A stretch of DNA of 64,000 bases, from IMG/VR virus record IMGVR_UViG_3300026097_000876, positions 124,001-188,000 of that record. One strand, written 5' to 3'. The notes under the pieces were generated by a model. The model searched no databases. It had not been told where the DNA came from and was given only the letters and a program-made list of their open reading frames with translations. Positions within the stretch are counted from its first letter, which is position 1, and every line of letters starts with the position of its first letter. This document shows positions 2,535 to 62,381 of this stretch, piece by piece. Both the position numbers and the translations under genes were made by a program.

Positions 2535-3358
2535 AAATATTAGTAACTGGACACAACGGATTTATTGGAAGTCATATTTCTAATTATCTATTACACAATA
2601 ATCACGAAGTAGACGGATTTGATTACGTAGAAAACGTTATTCCTAATGTTGAACCATATGACTGGGTAATACATTGTGGAGCAATTTCTGATACTACAGA
2701 AAGAGATGTTGATAAAGTTTGGAAACACAATTACGAATTTACTATGCGACTATTACAAGTATGCGATCATCTCGGTACTAATATTCAATTAGCAAGTACG
2801 AGTGCTGTATACGGGTCAAACAAAAGTTTTAATGAAAATGATCCTGTATACCCACAAACTCCATATGCTTGGAGTAAATATCTTACTGATAAATTTTTAA
2901 AAGACAGTGGCATAAATGATTTTAATATGTTAGTGCAAAGTTTTAGATATTTTAACGTATACGGTCCAGGTGAAGGACATAAAAATGATCAAATGAGTTT
3001 GGTCAGTAAGTTTCAAAAACAAGCAATAGAAAATGGTGTAATTGAACTATTTGAAAATAGTGATCAATACGAAAGAGACTGTGTATGTGTGTACGATGTT
3101 GTTAGAATTCACGAGCAAATGATGAATCAAGATGTAAGTGGCATTTTTAACTTAGGAACCGGAAAAGCTCGTAATCTAGAATCTGTTGCACAAGTAATTG
3201 CTGATAAGTATGATGCTAAAATTAAATATATTGATATGCCAGAAAAATTAAAAGGTCAATATCAAGAATACACATGTGCAGATAACGCACTACTACATAA
3301 TACAATACCAATTAGACATTGGTTAACAATTGAGGAATATTTAAATGAATCCAACTAG
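2531..3358 (+). CDS. hldD: ADP-L-glycero-D-manno-heptose 6-epimerase-like extended SDR (HldD/RfaD)
   Basis: TGHNGFIGS Rossmann motif, HCGAISDTTE, ASTSAVYG, YAWSK (YxxxK), FRYFNVYGPGE. Start overlaps the hldE stop. Confidence 0.85.
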   Translation: MKILVTGHNGFIGSHISNYLLHNNHEVDGFDYVENVIPNVEPYDWVIHCGAISDTTERDVDKVWKHNYEFTMRLLQVCDHLGTNIQLASTSAVYGSNKSFNENDPVYPQTPYAWSKYLTDKFLKDSGINDFNMLVQSFRYFNVYGPGEGHKNDQMSLVSKFQKQAIENGVIELFENSDQYERDCVCVYDVVRIHEQMMNQDVSGIFNLGTGKARNLESVAQVIADKYDAKIKYIDMPEKLKGQYQEYTCADNALLHNTIPIRHWLTIEEYLNESN

Positions 3359-11730: not shown

Positions 11731-12246
11731 TTACACCTTGTCAAATGTTATACTTGTATTATCCATAGTATTATCGATGCTATCAAATGTATTTATACCA
11801 TCTGACTCAACTGTTGATACATCTGCGATAATAGCAGGAGGAGTAAGCTGATGAATTGTTTTTGCATACGTTGCGTGGAAAATTAATTTTGCACCTGTGT
11901 ATATGGATGATGCAGGACGGACCATCACTTTACAAATACTTTCGTCAACTGTTACTTCTAATGTAATTAATTCTTGGTTAATACTTGAACGACCAAACAC
12001 GCTTGCAACAGCTCTGTCTGGTCTTGCAACTACAGAAAGTTGCATAATTTCTTTTTCGTTGGAGTCATACTCTACAGTAATTTGATAAACTACACTACTG
12101 AAATCGCCCACATGCCAAGAGTCCATTACAGTATTGGGATGGACTCCTAGCCAGTTTCCTTTATAACTGAAACTATTTCTATCTGGAAGATGTATTGTGT
12201 TGTTTAAACCTTTTGAAAAAAGATTTGTTAGTAATTTATTCATCAT
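11731..12246 (-). CDS. Hypothetical virion-associated protein (171 aa)
   Basis: Intact ORF with RBS (GGAG), preceded by a late promoter; first gene of the structural unit ending at 3737. Confidence 0.6.
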   Translation of the reverse strand: MMNKLLTNLFSKGLNNTIHLPDRNSFSYKGNWLGVHPNTVMDSWHVGDFSSVVYQITVEYDSNEKEIMQLSVVARPDRAVASVFGRSSINQELITLEVTVDESICKVMVRPASSIYTGAKLIFHATYAKTIHQLTPPAIIADVSTVESDGINTFDSIDNTMDNTSITFDKV

Positions 12247-21338: not shown

Positions 21339-21346
21339 TATTTATA
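21339..21346 (-). promoter_or_regulatory. Late promoter, perfect TATAAATA
   Basis: Exact T4 late consensus on the minus strand, 24 nt upstream of the GT9 start and downstream of a terminator. Confidence 0.75.
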
Positions 21347-45977: not shown

Positions 45978-46385
45978 TTAGATTGCTGTTAATACAATGT
46001 AATCGTTTGTACTATCGTTTTCTAATACCCAAGTATATCTGTTGCCTGAAAAGTCAGTTGCAACACGCTTTGTGATTTTTGCAATGTTAATTTCAGTGCC
46101 AGATGGTGTAGTTCCTGCTGGATAACCAAACAGTCTCATTTCTCCAGCGGCATTAGGTGTTGAATTCTGAAGTACACATGTAGTTGTACTTGTTGAATCT
46201 TTTAGGTTAGTTGTGTCTAAGTTAGCTTCCTGTGCTACAACAAAAGTTTTTGCTCCGCGTTGCTTTACAATGCCGCCATCTGTTCTTAATTGTGTGTCGT
46301 AAAATTCTACTCTTACACCAGTGTTGCTTGTTGCTTCACCAATTACGTTAACACCATTTATATCTTTTGCTAATGGTCTACCCAT
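45978..46385 (-). CDS. Hypothetical protein (135 aa) downstream of the capsid gene
   Basis: Intact ORF with a strong AAGGAG RBS, its own late promoter and a terminator. Confidence 0.7.
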   Translation of the reverse strand: MGRPLAKDINGVNVIGEATSNTGVRVEFYDTQLRTDGGIVKQRGAKTFVVAQEANLDTTNLKDSTSTTTCVLQNSTPNAAGEMRLFGYPAGTTPSGTEINIAKITKRVATDFSGNRYTWVLENDSTNDYIVLTAI

Positions 46386-46408
46386 GATTATTTCTCCTTT
46401 GTTTAATC

Positions 46409-46480
46409 ATTGCCGTTCTAGGGTCTACGCGGTGGATTTCCGCATAAGTCCTACTCTAAGGTAGGCTCCTATATGACAAT
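46409..46480 (-). promoter_or_regulatory. Candidate structured 5' leader RNA
   Basis: AUUGUC/GGCAAU closing stem, with CCUAC/GUAGG and UAUGCGG/CCGCGUA hairpins. Confidence 0.45.
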
Positions 46481-55314: not shown

Positions 55315-55322
55315 TATAAATA
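55315..55322 (+). promoter_or_regulatory. Late promoter, perfect TATAAATA
   Basis: 40 nt upstream of the 55362 start. Confidence 0.7.
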
Positions 55323-55361: not shown

Positions 55362-56267
55362 ATGGTAGATAATAACATCCCGCCGTCAATGGGACAAACT
55401 GGAGTTCCGCTAGGACAAGTACAAGCAAATCCATTAGCAAAGCATTTAAGACAACCTAAAATTTATATTAAATTTCCTAGCGAAGGAAAATATTGGGCTA
55501 ATGGATCTTTAGAAACTACAGAAACTGGCGAGTATCCTGTATATGCTATGACAGCTAAAGATGAAATTACATTTAAAACTCCTGATGCACTGCTTAACGG
55601 GCAAGCTACTGTTGATGTGATACAAAGTTGTATTCCAAATATTAAAGACGGATGGTCAATTCCATCTATTGACATGGATGCTATTTTAATTGCAATTAGA
55701 ATGGCTAGCTTTGGTGACACTATTGATATGACTGTCAACGTGCCAAATACATCTATTCAAAAAGAATTTAAATTTAATCTCCAGCAACTATACGATCAGT
55801 ATATTAGCACTGTATTCGATGACGTTTTTAAAATTGACGGGTTTACCGTACAAATACAGCCAGTTACCTACCGTACTATGACACAGCAAAGTATTAAAGC
55901 ATTTGAAGAACAACGAGTTTTTTCAATTATTAATGACGATAATATTGACGATGCAACTAAGGTTGCTAAATTTCAAGAAAGTTTCAGGAAACTAACTGAA
56001 ATTAATATTAATACTATCATTGAAAGTGTAGTAGCTATTCAACCCGATGGTGAAGATCCTGTAACTAATAAAAAACATCTAACAGAATTTTTACAAGGGG
56101 CAGAAGCAAGGGTATACAATCAAATCAAAGATCATATCGAAGCACAAAAAGACAAATTTACACAAAAACCTGTGCAAGTTGCTTCTGAAGATGAAGAAGT
56201 TGAAGCAGGTGCTCCAAAAGTATACGATGTGCCTATTCAGTTTGATCAAAGCAATTTTTTCGGCTAA
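55362..56267 (+). CDS. gp26-like baseplate hub / tail assembly chaperone
   Basis: NPL..HLRQPKIYI.FPS.G, MTAKDEI.FK.PDALLNG, IQSCIP.I..GW.IPSID.DAILIAIR.ASFG. Confidence 0.8.
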   Translation: MVDNNIPPSMGQTGVPLGQVQANPLAKHLRQPKIYIKFPSEGKYWANGSLETTETGEYPVYAMTAKDEITFKTPDALLNGQATVDVIQSCIPNIKDGWSIPSIDMDAILIAIRMASFGDTIDMTVNVPNTSIQKEFKFNLQQLYDQYISTVFDDVFKIDGFTVQIQPVTYRTMTQQSIKAFEEQRVFSIINDDNIDDATKVAKFQESFRKLTEININTIIESVVAIQPDGEDPVTNKKHLTEFLQGAEARVYNQIKDHIEAQKDKFTQKPVQVASEDEEVEAGAPKVYDVPIQFDQSNFFG

Positions 56268-56317
56268 GGATCTTAACGTGGAACCTCGACAAAATCCTAG
56301 ACGAGGTTAAGGTCCTT
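56255..56317 (+). other. Programmed -1 ribosomal frameshift signal
   Basis: Slippery heptamer U UUU UUC (56255-61) in frame, 6-nt spacer, then stem GGAUCUU/AAGGUCC plus inner AACCUCG/CGAGGUU. Confidence 0.7.
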
Positions 56318-56491
56318 GAAGGAGAGGTTAAACAAATCAAATCTGAATTGATGAGAATTTGTTGGTGGATGAGAGGATCTATTACACTCAGCGAAGTCTA
56401 CTATCTAACTATAGAAGACAGACAACTAATTAACGATTTAATTAAAGAAAATTTAGATACAGCTAAGAAAAGCGGACAACCTTTTTGGTAA
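56261..56491 (+). CDS. -1 frame extension (76 aa, gp51-like/gpT-like) of the gp26-like gene; not in ORF track
   Basis: Open -1 frame RLRILTWNLDKILDEVKVLEGEVKQIKSELMRICWWMRGSITLSEVYYLTIEDRQLINDLIKENLDTAKKSGQPFW*. It is bounded upstream by TGA at 56243 and fills an otherwise empty 230-nt gap. Confidence 0.7.
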   Translation, partial: RLRILTWNLDKILDEVKVLEGEVKQIKSELMRICWWMRGSITLSEVYYLTIEDRQLINDLIKENLDTAKKSGQPFW

Positions 56492-56495
56492 ACTC

Positions 56496-57227
56496 TTACT
56501 TAGAAACTTTAAGTCCAGCACGTTGTATAACGTCTTTAGCTTTGTTTATTTCTCGCTCACTCGGCATCTTAACATTTCCCTTAGGTGCAGGCGTTGCAGC
56601 ATCTTTATCAGATGTTGGTGCGTCACCATAAGAACTTTTTCCTATGCGTGATCCTAGTTGCTTTTGGAATCCTTGCTGAACAAAACGTTTTATTACTTTT
56701 TTAACTTGATCATTATCTAATTTTAAATCTACTTCATTTATCATTGCTTCATTATACATGCTTTGTAGATCTAATTCGCCTTGACCTGATTTAGGAGTTA
56801 GCTTAGTTGGCTCTGGCTTTAATTTATCTTTAACAGTCTTTGCTGCACTTGCTACTTTTTTAGCACCTGTTTTAGCAGCATCCCCGGCTTTTTTTGCTGC
56901 TCCAGCTACCTTCTTAGCACCTTTAGCAATCTGTCTACCCATACTAGGATCTTGATTAATGTAAGAAAGTACAGCCTTAGGACTAGAAACAAATCCCTTA
57001 CCAGCTAAAAAATTAGCAAGTCCTTTAGCTGTCATACCTTGATTTTTTGGATCTTGCTTTGCTACTGCATAAAAGTCTTTGAATAAACTTTTTACTTCTT
57101 GATCAATTTCGACATCCAACTGAGCTGCTTTACCCATTGCCGTATTTTTTCCAAGTGTTCTTTTTAGAAATCTAACAGGACCTTCATCAACTTGTTTTGA
57201 TTCAGTTAAAATATCATAAACTTTCAT
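56496..57227 (-). CDS. Lys/Ala-rich late protein, possible internal head protein
   Basis: MKVYDILTESKQVDE N-terminus; basic; own TATAAATA promoter. Confidence 0.6.
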   Translation of the reverse strand: MKVYDILTESKQVDEGPVRFLKRTLGKNTAMGKAAQLDVEIDQEVKSLFKDFYAVAKQDPKNQGMTAKGLANFLAGKGFVSSPKAVLSYINQDPSMGRQIAKGAKKVAGAAKKAGDAAKTGAKKVASAAKTVKDKLKPEPTKLTPKSGQGELDLQSMYNEAMINEVDLKLDNDQVKKVIKRFVQQGFQKQLGSRIGKSSYGDAPTSDKDAATPAPKGNVKMPSEREINKAKDVIQRAGLKVSK

Positions 57228-57252
57228 TATTCTTATAACTCCTAATATAGTG

Positions 57253-57260
57253 TATTTATA
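57253..57260 (-). promoter_or_regulatory. Late promoter, perfect TATAAATA
   Basis: 26 nt upstream of the 57227 start. Confidence 0.7.
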
Positions 57261-57269
57261 TGTTTGTTA

Positions 57270-57800
57270 TGAATATCTACTTCGTAGATATTAGTTTTCG
57301 CTATCGCTCAAACTATTTACTTCGTAATTAGATTATAAGAAGCATTATGACGAATGTCATAATGTTTAAGTTTCATGTAGATCGTTTCAGTCAGACGGAA
57401 CCTGTTACGGTCCCATCTAATCTCAAAATTGTGCTTCATGTGAGTCATGCTTGCAGCCGAGACATTGGAAGTAGGTGTTTGTTATACTGCTACACAATGG
57501 GCTCTGACCTTTCCCAACCTACGTCGACATCGTGTACTATATAGAGTGCATAAAACGCCTTTATGCTTTCTTTATAGTACATTACCTCTCGCTTCGTTCC
57601 TATTGCTAAAGAGTTTTTATGTGTAATGTGCAGTTTTTCGACAGCCAACAGTCTATCTATACCAACTAGTGAGCCCAATTTGTTTGATGGCTTCCTACCT
57701 CTGGGTAGTCAATCAGTATGTTACGTGTGCTTCTATACGAGAGCTTTTTCCACAGCGGTATTGCATTCTGGCCCGCCAACCTTATGTGTTGGGTTATTTT
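57270..57800 (-). ncRNA. Candidate large structured non-coding RNA/DNA element
   Basis: Only long gap in an otherwise densely coding window; at least 8 inverted repeats (see findings). Strand inferred from flanking genes. Confidence 0.45.
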
Positions 57801-57803
57801 GCC

Positions 57804-58067
57804 TTACAGTTTGCCTTTAAGGAATCTTCCTTTGGTCCTGCCTGCTTTTTTATCTGTGTTGCTGCCTTGAGTAGGTGTTATACCAGTTCGCTTAGTTGTC
57901 CAAGAATCAATTTGTTTTTCAGTAAGGCTTAAATTTGTATCTTTGCCTTTGTAGTTTTTAGTTTTTTCTCTAAGAACATCGCCATTAATTTTCCATTGTT
58001 CACGCTGTGCTTGTCTACTGCGTTCAAGCTTTTCAAGTCTTTCCTGATATTTCTTTTTGCTTGACAT
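57804..58067 (-). CDS. Small basic hypothetical protein (87 aa)
   Basis: K/R-rich ORF overlapping the end of the GIY-YIG gene; weak RBS. Confidence 0.45.
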   Translation of the reverse strand: MSSKKKYQERLEKLERSRQAQREQWKINGDVLREKTKNYKGKDTNLSLTEKQIDSWTTKRTGITPTQGSNTDKKAGRTKGRFLKGKL

Positions 58068-58488
58068 GATGTTCCAATAATGCTTGTCTTAGTTTTTCTG
58101 AACCGCCTACTCTAACATTAATAATGCCGTTGTAGTACTCGTCTGTTTCAAGAACACGACGATCAAATTGTTCCTTAGCCTCTATGTAGCTCATTTCTGC
58201 TCTGCTTTTACACAGATATAATATTTCTCTTGTGAAGTTTTCCGGGCCTAGTGCAGTGACGTCAGCGTTGAGTCTATCAGATGATCCCCAATAGTCTTTC
58301 CAGTCTGACTCTTTGAATCCACGTCTTTTATTTTTTTTGCCTTTAAGTGGTGGTTTAGTGGTTTTGAACTTGGCTAGTTTTTTGCCTATGTATTTTTGTC
58401 CGGTTTTTATGTTAGTGATAAGATAAACAAATCCTTCGTATTCGTCTGGAATTGATTCGACCTCTTTACCTTTGTAAGTCCACTGCAT
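58033..58488 (-). CDS. GIY-YIG family endonuclease (standalone catalytic domain)
   Basis: GFVYLITN...GQKYIGKK, WKDYWGSS, F.REILYLC.SR.EMSYIEAKEQF, YYNGII. No long C-terminal DNA-binding arm. Confidence 0.8.
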   Translation of the reverse strand: MQWTYKGKEVESIPDEYEGFVYLITNIKTGQKYIGKKLAKFKTTKPPLKGKKNKRRGFKESDWKDYWGSSDRLNADVTALGPENFTREILYLCKSRAEMSYIEAKEQFDRRVLETDEYYNGIINVRVGGSEKLRQALLEHHVKQKEISGKT

Positions 58489-58514: not shown

Positions 58515-58718
58515 TTATTTGCCTTTTCTGGTTACACGTTCTGTATTGTGTTTGACATGTATTTCGTCCATGCGCTGTTTTGCCAGAATTCGTATTTCTC
58601 GCAACCACCTACGGCTTTCTTTATGTGTTCTCACACTATTTCTTGCTTCAAACTTCTCGTTTGCTTTAAAGTAAGCCATATATGCTTTAGTTAATTTGTC
58701 ATGAGTATCGTCATTCAT
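58515..58718 (-). CDS. Hypothetical protein (67 aa)
   Basis: Start overlaps the gp46 stop; helical and basic. Confidence 0.6.
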   Translation of the reverse strand: MNDDTHDKLTKAYMAYFKANEKFEARNSVRTHKESRRWLREIRILAKQRMDEIHVKHNTERVTRKGK

Positions 58719-60486
58719 TATATATTTCTACATCGTTTTCGTAACTAGTAAAGCCGTTTTCTTTAATAACTTTCATAACGTGATTAACTCTACCTATTAA
58801 CTCGTCCTTGTGACTAATTAAAAATACATTTTTTTCACGCTCACGGCCCATCTTTTTAATTACACTAAGTGCATTCTCAACACCGTTAGTGTCAAGTCCG
58901 TTGTCTACTAATTCATCAATAAACAATAGGTTAATATTTTGATATAAACTTTCCCAAACGTCACGGAATGCAAAGCTCATACCTAAGATAAGTCTGTTGC
59001 GTTCACCTCTTGACAAGTTATCAAAGTCTAGATCTTGACCTAGTTGTGTAATTTCAACATTTAGATCATTTTGGAATACAACTTGATGCGGAAGTCCTAG
59101 TTTGTCAAGATAATATGTAAGCCTGTTGTTTAGGTATGCAAGATTTTGATCAATAATCTTCTTACGAATAAAACTGTCTTTGTTTGTTAGTAGTTTTAGC
59201 AAGAATTCTTGATGTTCTTTTACTTCTGTTAAGTCATTTACAGCAGACCAGTCTATTTCTTGTATTGCTTCTCGATTCAACTCATCAATTTGAGATTGAT
59301 ACGGATCATCTTCTTGTTGTTTACTTAATAATGCTGCCTGCAAATTATCTACATTGTTTCTATGTTCATATGCTTCTTTTAGTGTTTCATAGAATGTGTT
59401 AGGCTTTGAAATATTATCACCTAAGTCAGTTAATCCTTTTAGAACTTCTGAAAGTTTTGTGTTTACTTCTGATTGATATGCAATGGCATCTTCTAATTCT
59501 TTTGCTTTTTCTGCTAAAATTTCTTGCTTTTTGTCTTCATGTAAATTTTGACCACAAGTATAACATGTTGCATCCTCAAGATTTAATACGTCTTTTTCAA
59601 TCTTTTTAACACGCTTATCAGCTTGTAGTAGAGCACTTTCTAGTGTGCTTTTTTCTTTGTTTAAGACCGATATTGCATTGTTTAGTTCACTCCAATTTTG
59701 TAATTTTTCGTGTGACTCTAATTCTACATCAACATCTAAGTGTTCTAGTTCTTCAATTGCATTTTCTAAATTTTTAATATCTTGCGACTTTTTAGCAACC
59801 CAAGTTCGTTTCGTACGATCTAAATTATCAATTGTCGACTGAATTTTTTCATTTGCTGCCTGAATTGCTGTAATTTTAGCTGTTTCTTCTTGAATTGCAT
59901 CTTTAGATGAACGAATCTGTTCTTTGAGAACTTCTGCTTTCTCACTAAGAATGGTAATACCCAATAACTGTTCAATAATAGCACGTTGATCATTTTGACG
60001 CATACTTAAAAACGGTTCTGTATAGGTATTAAGTGCAACAATGTGTTTAAACATATCATGCGTCATGCCTAACAATTCATTGATTTCTTCTTGAGTTTTA
60101 CGACTGTCGCCCTGACTCTCATCGATCATTTCTTGTTCTTGATCGTTAATAAAAAATTTCAATACATTAGGAGAACGACCTCGTTCAATCCTATAGTCTA
60201 ATCCATCTTTTTCAAAATGTAATGTAACTAACATTCCTTTTGAATTAGTTTTGTTAATAAGATTGTTACGTTTAATATTAGTTAATGCTTGCCCGTACAT
60301 AGCGTAACTGAGTGCATTAATAATTGTAGTCTTACCAGTACCGTTGCGTGACCCGCTGTCATCGCCGCCTTGGTCTAAGTTTTCACCTAACACAAGAGTA
60401 AGTTGTTCTTTATTGAAATCTACAGCCTGAGTCTGATTGCCCACGCTCATAAAATTCTTGACTGTTAAATCCTTAATACGTATCAT
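58711..60486 (-). CDS. gp46: Recombination ATPase, Rad50/SbcC-like (gp46)
   Basis: Walker A SRNGTGKTT, zinc hook CYTC, signature LSRGE, Walker B LFIDE, ISHK. Confidence 0.93.
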   Translation of the reverse strand: MIRIKDLTVKNFMSVGNQTQAVDFNKEQLTLVLGENLDQGGDDSGSRNGTGKTTIINALSYAMYGQALTNIKRNNLINKTNSKGMLVTLHFEKDGLDYRIERGRSPNVLKFFINDQEQEMIDESQGDSRKTQEEINELLGMTHDMFKHIVALNTYTEPFLSMRQNDQRAIIEQLLGITILSEKAEVLKEQIRSSKDAIQEETAKITAIQAANEKIQSTIDNLDRTKRTWVAKKSQDIKNLENAIEELEHLDVDVELESHEKLQNWSELNNAISVLNKEKSTLESALLQADKRVKKIEKDVLNLEDATCYTCGQNLHEDKKQEILAEKAKELEDAIAYQSEVNTKLSEVLKGLTDLGDNISKPNTFYETLKEAYEHRNNVDNLQAALLSKQQEDDPYQSQIDELNREAIQEIDWSAVNDLTEVKEHQEFLLKLLTNKDSFIRKKIIDQNLAYLNNRLTYYLDKLGLPHQVVFQNDLNVEITQLGQDLDFDNLSRGERNRLILGMSFAFRDVWESLYQNINLLFIDELVDNGLDTNGVENALSVIKKMGREREKNVFLISHKDELIGRVNHVMKVIKENGFTSYENDVEIYNE

Positions 60487-61493
60487 AGTTCGTTATAAAT
60501 GTCCAATAGCATTTTTTTGTTAAAATTATCCGAGTCAATTGCTGAAATTTCCTTAGACACAATTTGATCTACACTTTCAAATTGTTGAATATCAATGTCA
60601 GTAGAAATTTCTTCAATTTGTTTTTGAGGAATAAGTGTAATTTCTCTACAATTATGTTGATTAATAAACGTTTCTTTAATAAATTGTGCTTCTTCGTAAC
60701 TAATTGGTAAATCTAAAGTAACTCGAAGATACATTTTTGACTTAATAATTGTATCTGCTTGATCAATTAACTCACTTAGCTTAACAGTTCGATACTTAGG
60801 GCAATCTGGCCAATTAATAAATTGGGGTTCCTTGTTGTTTTCACGATCAAGAATCATCATCCCACGCTCGTCATCCCACGCATCAGCATAGTTGTGCGGA
60901 AACGCATTGCCAATATAGTGAATCGCACCTTGTACTTGACGTTTGTGGAAGTGTCCTGAGAACACATACTCTTGATGCTTAAAATGCTCTGGCTTTAGAT
61001 CACCGTGATCGGGCATCTTAACCAATGCGTTCATATAAAAGCTAGGAAGTTCAAAGTGGCCAAACATATATTTGGCTTTGATCTTTTCAATTTTTTTCCA
61101 TTCGTCGCCTACTAGCCAAGGAACCAAACAAACATCTTCTACTTCTGTAATCTCGTTTACAACAGTTACACCTGGAATGTGTTTCCCAAACTCAACTGAA
61201 TGGATATCTCGTTTGTCTTTGTAGTACAAATCGTGGTTGCCAGGAAAGTAAAAAAATTGTTCAAATGATTGTCCTAACTTTTCTAAACTACGTAGAGTTG
61301 CATCCATAGTTGTAATGTTTAGACTGTTACGATTATGATGCCAGTCCCCGCAGAAAATGCCAGTTTCACACCCGGCAGCTTGTGCTTGCTCTATGTACCA
61401 ATCTACAAATTCTTCACAATCTTGATTGTGGATTTTTGAATTACTTTTTAATCCAAAATGTATGTCTGTAAAGACAGCAGCTTTTTTAAACAA
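60483..61493 (-). CDS. gp47: Recombination nuclease, Mre11/SbcD-like (gp47)
   Basis: TDIHFG, GDWHH, PGNHDLY, GHFE, SGHFH metallophosphoesterase motifs. Confidence 0.93.
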   Translation of the reverse strand: MFKKAAVFTDIHFGLKSNSKIHNQDCEEFVDWYIEQAQAAGCETGIFCGDWHHNRNSLNITTMDATLRSLEKLGQSFEQFFYFPGNHDLYYKDKRDIHSVEFGKHIPGVTVVNEITEVEDVCLVPWLVGDEWKKIEKIKAKYMFGHFELPSFYMNALVKMPDHGDLKPEHFKHQEYVFSGHFHKRQVQGAIHYIGNAFPHNYADAWDDERGMMILDRENNKEPQFINWPDCPKYRTVKLSELIDQADTIIKSKMYLRVTLDLPISYEEAQFIKETFINQHNCREITLIPQKQIEEISTDIDIQQFESVDQIVSKEISAIDSDNFNKKMLLDIYNEL

Positions 61494-61516: not shown

Positions 61517-61545
61517 AGTATAACTAGTTTTTGTGTGTAAGTCAA
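61517..61545 (-). promoter_or_regulatory. Sigma70-type promoter for gp47/gp46
   Basis: TTGACT-17 nt-TATACT. Confidence 0.75.
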
Positions 61546-62381
61546 GAATTTTTTTTGGTCTGTTGATCGTTACGCTCAACTTCTCTTTCCCACTGACCCT
61601 GTTGTTGTCTAGTAAAGCTAGGTGTTAAGTCGTTCATTTCAAGAATATCGTCTCGAATGTTTTGATTACGTTTTTCAATGTTAATGACACGTACAAAACT
61701 ATTTGTAACTGCGGCTGTATAGTATGCAAACGGATTTTGTGACTTAGATTCGTCAAACTGTAAGCCAATTTGTGCTAATTGTAGTATAGCTTGTCCACGC
61801 ATTTCATCATTGTAAGTGTAACCACGTACATTGCCTCTAGTAGCATATCGATCGCATAACTTCATCCACATTGTAGCAAGTTTGTCGGTTGACTTTCCGT
61901 GATTCAAACTAAAGTAACCGTTCGACATACCACCCTTCCAGTGACTTTTTCCTACACACTCTAGCTCGTCACTTTCAGTGTTAAATTTATAGTGTTGAAA
62001 CGGAGGAAAATTTAATTTTACTCTCGTATCAGCAACAGTCTTAGGATTTTTCTTGCGTCCTGGCTCTTCTGGAATGTGATCAAACGTCATAATTCGAAAG
62101 ATAAGTTCGTCTTTCGAAATCTTTTTGTAATCAACTTCGTACTCGGCAAGTTTTACTTTCAGACCTTCGGCTTTTGCAGCTTCAAACCGTTGTTGTTGTA
62201 GCCTTTTAGCTTTGTTACGTTTTGCTTCTGCAATAGTTCTAACGTTAATTTTTTCAACATCTGGTAAAATAATATCGTACTGATGATACTCTTTATCGAT
62301 ATAACTACAAAACGTATTTTTTGATCTGTGTATTTCTTTTAATATATCTTTATTATTAAGATAGTTAACTCTTTTAGTCAT
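61542..62381 (-). CDS. gp55: Late transcription sigma factor (gp55-like)
   Basis: VNYLNNKDIL, RGNVRGYTYNDEM...A, FDESKSQNPFAYYT....NSF.R.I..EKR. Confidence 0.85.
   Translation of the reverse strand: MTKRVNYLNNKDILKEIHRSKNTFCSYIDKEYHQYDIILPDVEKINVRTIAEAKRNKAKRLQQQRFEAAKAEGLKVKLAEYEVDYKKISKDELIFRIMTFDHIPEEPGRKKNPKTVADTRVKLNFPPFQHYKFNTESDELECVGKSHWKGGMSNGYFSLNHGKSTDKLATMWMKLCDRYATRGNVRGYTYNDEMRGQAILQLAQIGLQFDESKSQNPFAYYTAAVTNSFVRVINIEKRNQNIRDDILEMNDLTPSFTRQQQGQWEREVERNDQQTKKNS

Follow-up and report, generated by a model that had tools for sequence, protein, structure and literature searches.

The region studied lies in a fragment of a marine jumbo phage, within a stretch of 64,000 nt of IMG/VR record IMGVR_UViG_3300026097_000876 (positions 124,001 to 188,000), called here the window; all coordinates are those of the window. 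On its minus strand, a small GIY-YIG nuclease gene is followed by an 87-aa basic ORF (orf87) and by 576 nt without any ORF (57228-57803). This is the largest stretch in the window not covered by a plausible ORF, the next largest being 228, 168, 136 and 122 nt. Its GC content is 0.42-0.44, against about 0.35 in the flanks, and the single-sequence MFE z-score is -3.6 on the minus strand and -2.1 on the plus strand. The preliminary description, made from sequence alone, had reported a minimal GIY-YIG nuclease without an obvious DNA-binding arm, a small basic ORF and a structured non-coding region of about 530 nt as the only large gap in the window, and this observation was confirmed, with all three components in place and co-oriented. 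The features are as follows:

58033-58488 (-), GIY-YIG nuclease gene, 151 aa, SegE-type catalytic domain only
57804-58067 (-), orf87, a small basic protein (pI 10.4, 24 K+R) overlapping the nuclease stop by 35 nt
57272-57801 (-), the structured RNA, as delimited by a profile match (57799-57293) and a 3' hairpin extending to 57272
57787-57792 (-), 5' strand of pseudoknot PK-A (CCAACA), pairing with 57645-57650 in the loop of hairpin H5
57724-57778 (-), H2 (57773-57778 with 57753-57758) and the H3 outer stem (57751-57754 with 57724-57727) with its inner hairpin
57659-57719 (-), H4 domain, with closing stem 57713-57719 with 57659-57665 and variable inner hairpins
57640-57657 (-), hairpin H5, whose loop forms PK-A
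57487-57633 (-), long-range helix H6 (57620-57633 with 57487-57496), enclosing H7 (57586-57613, conserved loop AGGAACGAAG) and the variable hairpin H8 (57533-57581)
57456-57528 (-), H14 (57524-57528 with 57456-57460) stacked on H10 (57517-57522 with 57471-57476) and capped by H9 (57513-57516 with 57498-57501); H6 crosses this stem, giving a second pseudoknot
57434-57444 (-), R1, first copy of a co-varying direct word (CUCACAUGAAG), whose first bases form the 3' strand of hairpin H11
57394-57417 (-), H12, a 9-bp hairpin (GAUGGGACC/GGUUCCGUC) followed by the invariant UGACUGAAAC; 57389-57395 may pair with the H9 loop at 57503-57509 (possible pseudoknot PK-B)
57371-57381 (-), R2, second copy of the direct word (UCUACAUGAAA)
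57343-57364 (-), H13, a terminator-like hairpin followed by a U-rich, variable tail
57272-57327 (-), conserved 3' element (UUACGAAGUAA...UUGAGCGAUAGCGAAAAC) and a hairpin with an ACGAAGU loop (57272-57292)
57253-57260 (-), TATAAATA, a T4-type late-promoter motif upstream of a 243-aa gene (56496-57227), marking the downstream limit of the RNA unit

The nuclease matched Pfam PF19835 (SegE_GIY-YIG) with an E-value of 6e-35 over residues 3-123, covering all 123 profile positions, as well as PHROG 447 and homing-endonuclease PHROGs. VYL...YIG followed by R, E and N is visible in the sequence, although these residues were assigned by our own reading and not from an alignment to a solved structure, and no PDB sequence hit was obtained. 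Since only about 28 residues follow the domain, there is no separate DNA-binding domain. Among 152 distinct intact ORFs of 129-152 aa, the median dN/dS was 0.10, the same as for gp46, so the gene is intact and under purifying selection across the clade. In contrast, orf87 was found in only 4 distinct loci (L001, L031, L092 and L210 in our collection), always with 87 aa and with 61-91% identity (dN/dS about 0.17 on 3 pairs), and gave no Pfam, PHROG or NCBIfam family, including any recognisable DNA-binding family. It is a sporadic insertion between the nuclease and the RNA.

A total of 103 distinct homologues of the RNA were collected, while nhmmer found a single copy in the window (E 5.5e-129). 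A hidden or decayed protein gene was ruled out, since the homologues have no conserved stop-free frame, their lengths vary and indels are frequent. Covariation, which had been proposed beforehand as a check, was examined over 57 base pairs in 10 helices. Of all cells, 97.2% pair, and 35 pairs show compensatory double changes (481 cells); none of 500 column shuffles reached this, and slid controls were only 35-46% paired. In the helices G-U outnumbers A-C 633 to 27, which fixes the strand as minus. RNAalifold independently recovered H5, H14, H10, H9 and H12. DNA identity to the window is 80-82% for the RNA, against 73-76% for gp46 and the nuclease.

At the level of single helices, PK-A is 98% paired with compensatory changes in 5 of 6 pairs, and CCAACA/UGUUGG becomes ACAGAA/UUCUGU in a second clade of phages described below. 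H2 and H3 are 96-99% paired with compensatory changes, also in the second clade. In the H4 domain, three pairs switch UA/CG or AU/GC in 28-39 sequences, and H5 shows compensatory changes in 4 of 5 pairs. H6b is 96% paired with compensatory changes in all 6 pairs, and H7 has 3 pairs with 13-36 double changes. H10 is 99.4% paired with UA to CG or GC changes, and H9 has GC/AU changes. H12 is 98.6% paired, with 113 G-U against 1 A-C and CG to UA in 7 sequences. Alternative partners for GUAGGU and for UCUGACU (H10alt and P7alt) were rejected because variant sequences break them, while the local H10 stays 100% paired. H13 was flagged by a terminator scan and is present with different sequences in all relatives examined. 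The 3' element is conserved in both clades and its hairpin stem co-varies, whereas the late-promoter motif is conserved in relatives about 25-35 nt before the ATG of the next gene.

Of the stems proposed in the preliminary description, comparative data support GTAGGT/ACCTAC (57471-57522, H10), UGGG/CCCA (H9), the 9-bp stem (57394-57417, H12), the 49-nt hairpin (57533-57581, H8, a variable peripheral hairpin that some relatives lack) and CTACC/GGTAG (an inner hairpin of the H4 domain). The local CCAAC/GTTGG hairpin (57776-57792) is not what is conserved, as CCAACA pairs instead with the loop of a hairpin about 140 nt downstream, forming PK-A. The proposed GGUCAG/CUGACU pairing is possible but nearly invariant, and stays without comparative support.

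R1 and R2, two heptamers flanking H12, showed an unexplained behavior. Their 7 core positions are identical to each other in 99 of 103 RNAs, but they vary between genomes in at least 17 variants. No complementary covarying column was found elsewhere in the RNA. The complement of R occurs at the nuclease start codon in 23-26 of 70 genomes with the majority word, but this match does not co-vary in genomes with other R variants. The signal, two words kept identical while they drift between genomes, points to a specific, still unknown partner.

The genomic context was then compared. In a clade of T4-like marine phages (the main clade), the order gp46, orf67, nuclease, RNA is invariant, holding in 200 of 208 testable loci, and all 8 exceptions belong to the second clade. 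The adjacency survives insertions upstream of the nuclease, even where other genes lie between orf67 and the nuclease. However, inserts of more than 150 nt separate the nuclease from the RNA in 16 loci, and when orf87 is inserted, the RNA keeps its own 5' segment, GGCAAAAUAACCCAACA. The second clade consists of pelagiphage-like podoviruses with a TerL 45% identical to that of Pelagibacter podophages. Here the RNA lies 0.3-1.2 kb upstream of TerS in at least 16 of 27 loci, the neighbouring small ORFs differ (PF12843-like and others), and no GIY-YIG gene is adjacent. Conversely, nuclease homologues occur widely without the RNA: neither phage Melnitz, where a 70%-identical nuclease follows nrdB, nor cyanophage P-HM1, where the gene sits in a variable region, has the RNA by nhmmer.

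Three Rfam 15 scans were performed, of the whole window at gathering thresholds and of 1.7 kb and 603 nt on both strands at E up to 10. The only gathering-level hit in the window was freshwater-2 at 46383-46466, and the region itself gave only chance hits, mir-8499 on the 49-nt hairpin and PVT1. Therefore, the RNA is not a member of HEARO, ROOL or GOLLD. No tRNA or tmRNA was found in the window. A blastn search with the window RNA and two second-clade RNAs against 50,697 phage records found nothing even at E 1. In addition, an invariant 17-mer of the RNA occurs 75 times in 596 Gb of genomes, about the chance level; only 3 hits are real, and since they carry the phage gene order they are phage contigs inside MAGs. 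Literature searches found no description of this RNA.

Taken together, the gap is best explained as encoding an autonomous, roughly 450-530-nt, multi-pseudoknotted non-coding RNA of a new class with a still unknown function (probability about 0.55). The analysis itself establishes that the minus-strand RNA folds, that the fold is conserved by selection, more strongly at the nucleotide level than the neighbouring protein genes, and that it is carried by two unrelated groups of uncultured marine phages. The rest is inferred, in the absence of expression data: that the RNA is transcribed as the last element of an early/middle unit gp47-gp46-orf67-nuclease, that it ends at the H13 and 3' hairpins just before a late promoter, and that it acts as a folded RNA independently of the nuclease. 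Most likely it would be a scaffold or decoy (or a ribozyme) whose identical heptamers are read by one common partner, although this role is deduced from anatomy only. In this view, the nuclease is a free-standing SegE-family enzyme that became fixed next to a very conserved RNA gene, and the link is probably conserved gene order, possibly with a homing target, and not an RNA-protein machine. On the other hand, the adjacency is absolute within the main clade and the nuclease is fixed and under purifying selection, unlike a sporadic selfish homing gene, so a clade-specific functional tie is not excluded. In most genomes the nuclease stop codon also lies 2 nt after the PK-A strand, and translation and RNA folding could thus be coupled in cis.

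Few large, intricately folded bacterial or phage RNAs are known, and each has been informative, as with ribozymes, OLE and the GOLLD and ROOL cages. The present one, with at least two supported pseudoknots, is found in hundreds of contigs from marine, estuarine and lake viromes, including relatives of pelagiphages, which are among the most abundant viruses in the sea, and the comparative data already define a testable fold.

Among the alternatives, a mobile ribozyme element, new or highly divergent, self-splicing or otherwise mobile, and spread with the help of neighbouring homing endonucleases, is unlikely but survives best. The core is nearly identical in two unrelated phage lineages (21 invariant nt plus a shared architecture), which implies horizontal transfer, and endonuclease genes lie next to it, GIY-YIG in the main clade and HNH (PF13392) directly downstream in some podoviruses (loci L310, L335 and L336). 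The H-type pseudoknot with inserted hairpins and the 6-bp pairing of the 5' flank with a distant loop recall the group I P3/P7 pseudoknot and the group II IBS1-EBS1 pairing, and R1 and R2 could be reaction or recognition sites. However, no Rfam group I (RF00028), group II or GIR1 hit was obtained even at E up to 10, although the group I model misses divergent subgroups. No host gene is interrupted, since the flanks are the nuclease stop codon or unrelated small ORFs upstream, and a hairpin, the TATAAATA motif and an independent ATG downstream. Read from the sequence, there is no U-G at the putative 5' junction or in PK-A and no GUGYG or domain V-like element. For the canonical group I order the picture is mixed: H6 crossing H14/H10 forms a pseudoknot, but H9 sits between the strands corresponding to 5' P7 and 3' P3, and no hairpin takes the place of P8. 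Finally, the RNA holds a fixed position in both clades and is not sporadic.

About equally unlikely is a cis-acting 3' untranslated element that stabilises or regulates the early transcript, for example by coupling nuclease translation to RNA folding or by blocking 3'-to-5' decay. The RNA is co-oriented with the upstream ORF and directly abuts or overlaps it in both clades, the stop codon lies close to PK-A, the 3' end has terminator-like hairpins, and the complement of R occurs at some nuclease start codons. Nevertheless, around 500 nt with several pseudoknots and many invariant unpaired bases is far more than known 3' stabilisers need, the upstream gene differs between clades and even within the second clade, the match of R to the start codon does not co-vary, and orf87-type inserts are tolerated.

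The preliminary description had compared the layout with HEARO/omega RNA and IscB or with RNAs of the ROOL/GOLLD size class, and proposed a ribonucleoprotein, possibly RNA-guided, with the nuclease or the 87-aa protein. This interpretation was only partly supported: the undescribed, highly structured RNA and its co-orientation with a minimal nuclease held, but not the ribonucleoprotein, which is now considered improbable. In such a ribonucleoprotein the RNA would supply the target recognition, or a scaffold, that the domain-only nuclease lacks. Its favour rests on a nuclease that lacks a DNA-binding domain, is fixed, intact and selected, and is always immediately upstream of the RNA in the main clade. 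Against it, the RNA occurs without an adjacent nuclease in the second clade, the nuclease family is widespread without the RNA, and orf87 is a sporadic insert. No guide-like hypervariable end segment was seen, as the 5' end is conserved and the variable parts are peripheral hairpins and an AU-rich linker, and no precedent for an RNA-guided GIY-YIG enzyme turned up in the paper library searched. A nuclease gene next to a structured RNA does not by itself indicate an RNA-guided system. A more speculative reading, also doubtful, is a new catalytic or machine-like RNA (a ribozyme, switch or scaffold) that has moved between unrelated marine phage lineages, with the two concertedly evolving heptamers as programmable recognition sites for a nucleic-acid target and the domain-only nuclease as its effector in the myovirus clade. 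A DNA-level element (replication origin, packaging signal or recombination site) can practically be dismissed, since, despite the position at a module boundary and just upstream of the terminase genes in the second clade, and despite the resemblance of R1 and R2 to iterons or recombination cores, a duplex-DNA or strand-symmetric element would not show the G-U excess, and compensatory changes maintain long-range pseudoknotted pairings.

Compared with known systems, ROOL and GOLLD, large ornate RNAs of phages and prophages for which cryo-EM shows homo-oligomeric cages (PMC12286853), are of similar size class (about 0.5 kb), are carried by phages, have many helices and pseudoknots with highly conserved unpaired bases, have no known function and are not tied to one protein partner. 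Their Rfam models do not match, the present RNA is not near tRNA genes, habitat and phage groups differ, and ROOL and GOLLD are not known to have a feature like R1/R2. Group I introns with GIY-YIG homing endonucleases (T4 td with I-TevI), and free-standing endonucleases that home together with a neighbouring intron, share a pseudoknotted RNA next to a GIY-YIG gene in a T4-like phage, and NCBIfam gave the nuclease a weak hit to the group I intron endonuclease family (E 0.0015, below cut-off). Here, in contrast, the nuclease lies upstream of the RNA and not inside a loop, and the order of hairpins around the pseudoknot appears to differ from P3-P4/6-P7-P3'-P8-P7'. HEARO/omega RNA with IscB and TnpB reRNA, which belong to RNA-guided nucleases of mobile elements, also combine a structured RNA of a few hundred nt with an adjacent, co-oriented small nuclease gene, with a pseudoknot involving the 5' region, but the nuclease fold is RuvC/HNH and not GIY-YIG, and here RNA and nuclease occur separately.

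T4 segB, a GIY-YIG homing endonuclease gene embedded in the tRNA gene cluster (PMC2330249), similarly sits beside conserved RNA genes, whose DNA is a plausible cleavage or homing target. The present nuclease differs in having only the catalytic domain, without the C-terminal DNA-binding domain that gives site specificity, and in being fixed in 200 of 200 main-clade loci, although across T4-like phages the family sits in different contexts. Mobility of a nuclease-RNA cassette was examined by comparing identities across features, and no clear homing signature was found: the nuclease tracks gp46 (rho 0.59) and the RNA 3' half (rho 0.62), while orf67 is mosaic. In addition, a gp55 homologue lies at 61542-62381, as read from gene order and sequence.

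The locus lies in a run of minus-strand genes on a T4-like jumbo phage fragment (IMGVR_UViG_3300026097_000876, 261.8 kb). Reading along the minus strand, the order of the features is as follows:

61542-62381, minus strand, a gp55-like gene
60483-61493, minus strand, a gp47/Mre11-like gene
58711-60486, minus strand, a gp46/Rad50-like gene
58515-58718, minus strand, an ORF of 67 aa (orf67)
58033-58488, minus strand, the 151-aa GIY-YIG nuclease
57804-58067, minus strand, an ORF of 87 aa (orf87)
57228-57803, minus strand, 576 nt without a credible ORF
56496-57227, minus strand, a gene of 243 aa

The closest cultured relatives of gp46 are jumbo phages such as PA5oct and Phosso, at only 48-50% amino-acid identity. 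The nuclease matched Pfam SegE_GIY-YIG end to end (E 6e-35, residues 3-123) as well as homing-endonuclease PHROGs, and has no further domain, whereas orf87 is basic (pI 10.4) and matched no family. The gap is the largest in the window, is richer in G+C than its flanks and folds better than shuffled sequences, more so on the minus strand (z of -3.6 against -2.1). The layout given in the preliminary description, a large non-coding gap downstream of and co-oriented with a minimal GIY-YIG nuclease, was confirmed.

Since the region could be a known RNA or a decayed gene, both possibilities were examined. Rfam 15 gave nothing in the region at any threshold applied, and the only gathering-level hit in the window was freshwater-2 RNA at 46383-46466 on the minus strand (59.2 bits, E 1.8e-6), in the 168-nt gap upstream of the ORF at 45978-46385. 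ARAGORN found no tRNA or tmRNA in the window. Homologues of the gap have no shared open frame and differ by many indels, and blastn found nothing in 50,697 cultured-phage records.

Relatives were collected from IMG/VR with the 243-aa protein, with the nuclease and with an invariant 17-mer of the gap, which brought in more than 200 loci (numbered here with the prefix L). In all loci of this phage clade the order is gp46, orf67, nuclease, RNA, and it holds down to 53% gp46 identity and 52% nuclease identity, and also where extra genes are inserted between orf67 and the nuclease. With a profile HMM, 200 of 208 loci with enough upstream sequence, not deduplicated by contig, carry the nuclease directly upstream on the same strand. 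Four nuclease loci that had been scored by blastn as lacking the RNA carry a divergent copy. At least 13 of the 80 nuclease loci come from contigs that stop 60-190 nt into the RNA (L034, L060, L068-L070, L072, L077, L079, L081, L082, L087, L093 and L110), which may be an assembly breakpoint caused by microdiversity or uneven coverage at the conserved 5' part of the RNA.

In most genomes the RNA homology begins inside the last codons of the nuclease gene. orf87 is present in only four distinct loci and is a real coding insert, with 87 aa in all four and a dN/dS of about 0.17. It pushed the nuclease away from the RNA, while the RNA kept the original junction sequence. The junction between nuclease and RNA is an insertion hot spot, since 16 loci carry inserts of more than 150 nt there (among them L128, L132, L135, L191, L061, L088, L109, L170, L171 and L151), and only some of these are orf87 homologues.

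For the RNA fold, 103 distinct RNAs were aligned. Mutual information and helix-by-helix counts support ten helices plus peripheral hairpins, and two of the pairings are pseudoknots. In the first (PK-A), the 5' segment CCAACA pairs with the loop of hairpin H5, about 140 nt downstream, and in a second clade both sides change together, to ACAGAA/UUCUGU. In the second, the long-range helix H6 crosses the stacked stem H14/H10, which is capped by H9. Taken together, 57 pairs are 97.2% paired and 35 pairs show changes on both sides (481 cells). None of 500 column shuffles reached any of the four measures, and sliding the 3' partners by 1-3 columns dropped pairing to 35-46%. G-U cells outnumber A-C cells 633 to 27, indicating that the minus-strand transcript is the folded molecule and that a DNA-level element is unlikely. 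In addition, RNAalifold on 35 diverse 3' cores independently predicted H5, H14, H10, H9 and H12, with 12 pairs showing double changes.

The stems proposed in the preliminary description are mostly right, with the exception of a local CCAAC/GTTGG hairpin, which relatives replace with PK-A. The GGUCAG/CUGACU contact it also proposed (PK-B) is compatible with the data, but it is nearly invariant and is not obviously kept in the podovirus subclade. Some main-clade lineages (L016-L028, L064, L066, L051 and L080) keep the 3' half of the RNA downstream of the nuclease but have a 5' domain that is too divergent for blastn, or a replaced one, suggesting that the RNA is modular.

At the 3' side there is a terminator-like hairpin, H13, with a U-rich tail, followed by a conserved element with a small GNNA-capped stem and a hairpin with an ACGAAGU loop. 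ACGAAGT occurs at 18 sites in the window against 6.7 expected, a number that 0 of 100 shuffles reached. Two of the copies, at 57279-57285 and 57319-57325, are hairpin loops in the 3' element of the RNA, and a related AACGAAG is the conserved loop of helix H7. A T4-type late-promoter word, TATAAATA, lies 26 nt before the next gene.

Two of the loci retrieved with the 17-mer lacked gp46 and the nuclease. A pattern taken from their 5' ends retrieved more such loci, and a search with their small terminase retrieved 41. These contigs have a large terminase 45% identical to Pelagibacter podophages, and the RNA lies 0.3-1.2 kb upstream of TerS in at least 16 of the 27 loci with room, a lower bound because the profile is dominated by the other clade. 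The ORF just upstream differs between members, being a PF12843-like small protein or unrelated ORFs, and none has a GIY-YIG gene next to the RNA. In some members an HNH endonuclease (PF13392, E 6.9e-9) lies directly downstream of the RNA (L310, positions 2579-3043, and the same gene in L335 and L336), so that a different endonuclease family also neighbours this RNA. These RNAs share the architecture and supply the compensatory changes for H2, H5, PK-A, H6, H7, H9 and H10.

Conversely, the nuclease family occurs in 819 cultured-phage records, mostly cyanophages and enterobacterial T4-like phages. The Melnitz copy (70.6% identical) follows nrdB and the P-HM1 copy lies in a variable region, and neither locus contains the RNA by nhmmer at E up to 10. 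The invariant 17-mer is at chance frequency in 596 Gb of prokaryotic genomes, and its three genuine hits carry the phage gene order. Therefore, the RNA is a phage RNA and not a copy of a host RNA.

All 152 distinct copies of the nuclease are intact (129-152 aa), with a median dN/dS of 0.10, equal to that of gp46, so in this clade it is a maintained gene and not a decaying selfish one. Its identity to the window copy tracks that of gp46 and of the RNA 3' half (rho about 0.6), while orf67 is mosaic. No clean homing signature was seen.

An additional signal remained without explanation. Two direct words flank helix H12 on the minus strand, R1 at 57444-57434 and R2 at 57381-57371, and they were followed at the same positions in L005-L352. 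At their seven core positions they are identical to each other in 99 of 103 RNAs, yet they differ between genomes. With the podovirus sequences, at least 17 variants of 7-11 nt are seen and the two copies change together, a case of concerted evolution. This is identity and not complementarity. Only the first three core bases belong to hairpin H11, and no complementary covarying partner was found within the RNA or at the nuclease start codon. The simplest reading, which is inferred, is that one partner reads both words, and that partner could be a protein dimer or a nucleic acid. Alternatively, the two words could be equivalent reaction or processing sites.

The most likely explanation, with a probability of roughly 0.55, is an autonomous RNA of a new class with the nuclease as a conserved neighbour. 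The fold, the strand, the conservation, the distribution and the absence of any match to a described family rest directly on the analysis, whereas the transcription unit, the independence from the nuclease inside the main clade and any biochemical role are only inferred. A mobile ribozyme is less likely, and a cis-acting 3' UTR element is about equally doubtful. The ribonucleoprotein with the nuclease suggested in the preliminary description is unlikely, because the RNA and the nuclease occur separately in other lineages; the interpretation given there was upheld only in part, for the undescribed structured RNA and its place next to a co-oriented minimal nuclease, and not for the ribonucleoprotein. 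A DNA element is the least likely, because of the G-U asymmetry.

No description of this RNA was found in Rfam or in the searchable literature, although a 2023 survey of IMG/VR reports candidates averaging 67 nt (PMC10690425) and overlap with short pieces of this RNA cannot be excluded. In kind it is closest to the large ornate phage-borne RNAs ROOL and GOLLD (PMC12286853), but it does not match the family models that define them.

Elsewhere in the window, the late-promoter word TATAAATA is not over-represented overall (6 found against about 9 expected). However, four of the six copies lie in short intergenic gaps just upstream of genes, at 11790-11797 (minus), 21339-21346 (minus), 55315-55322 (plus) and 57253-57260 (minus). 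In addition, an ORF-free gap of 228 nt (56268-56495) lies between the convergent baseplate-hub-like gene (55362-56267, plus strand) and the 243-aa gene (56496-57227, minus strand).
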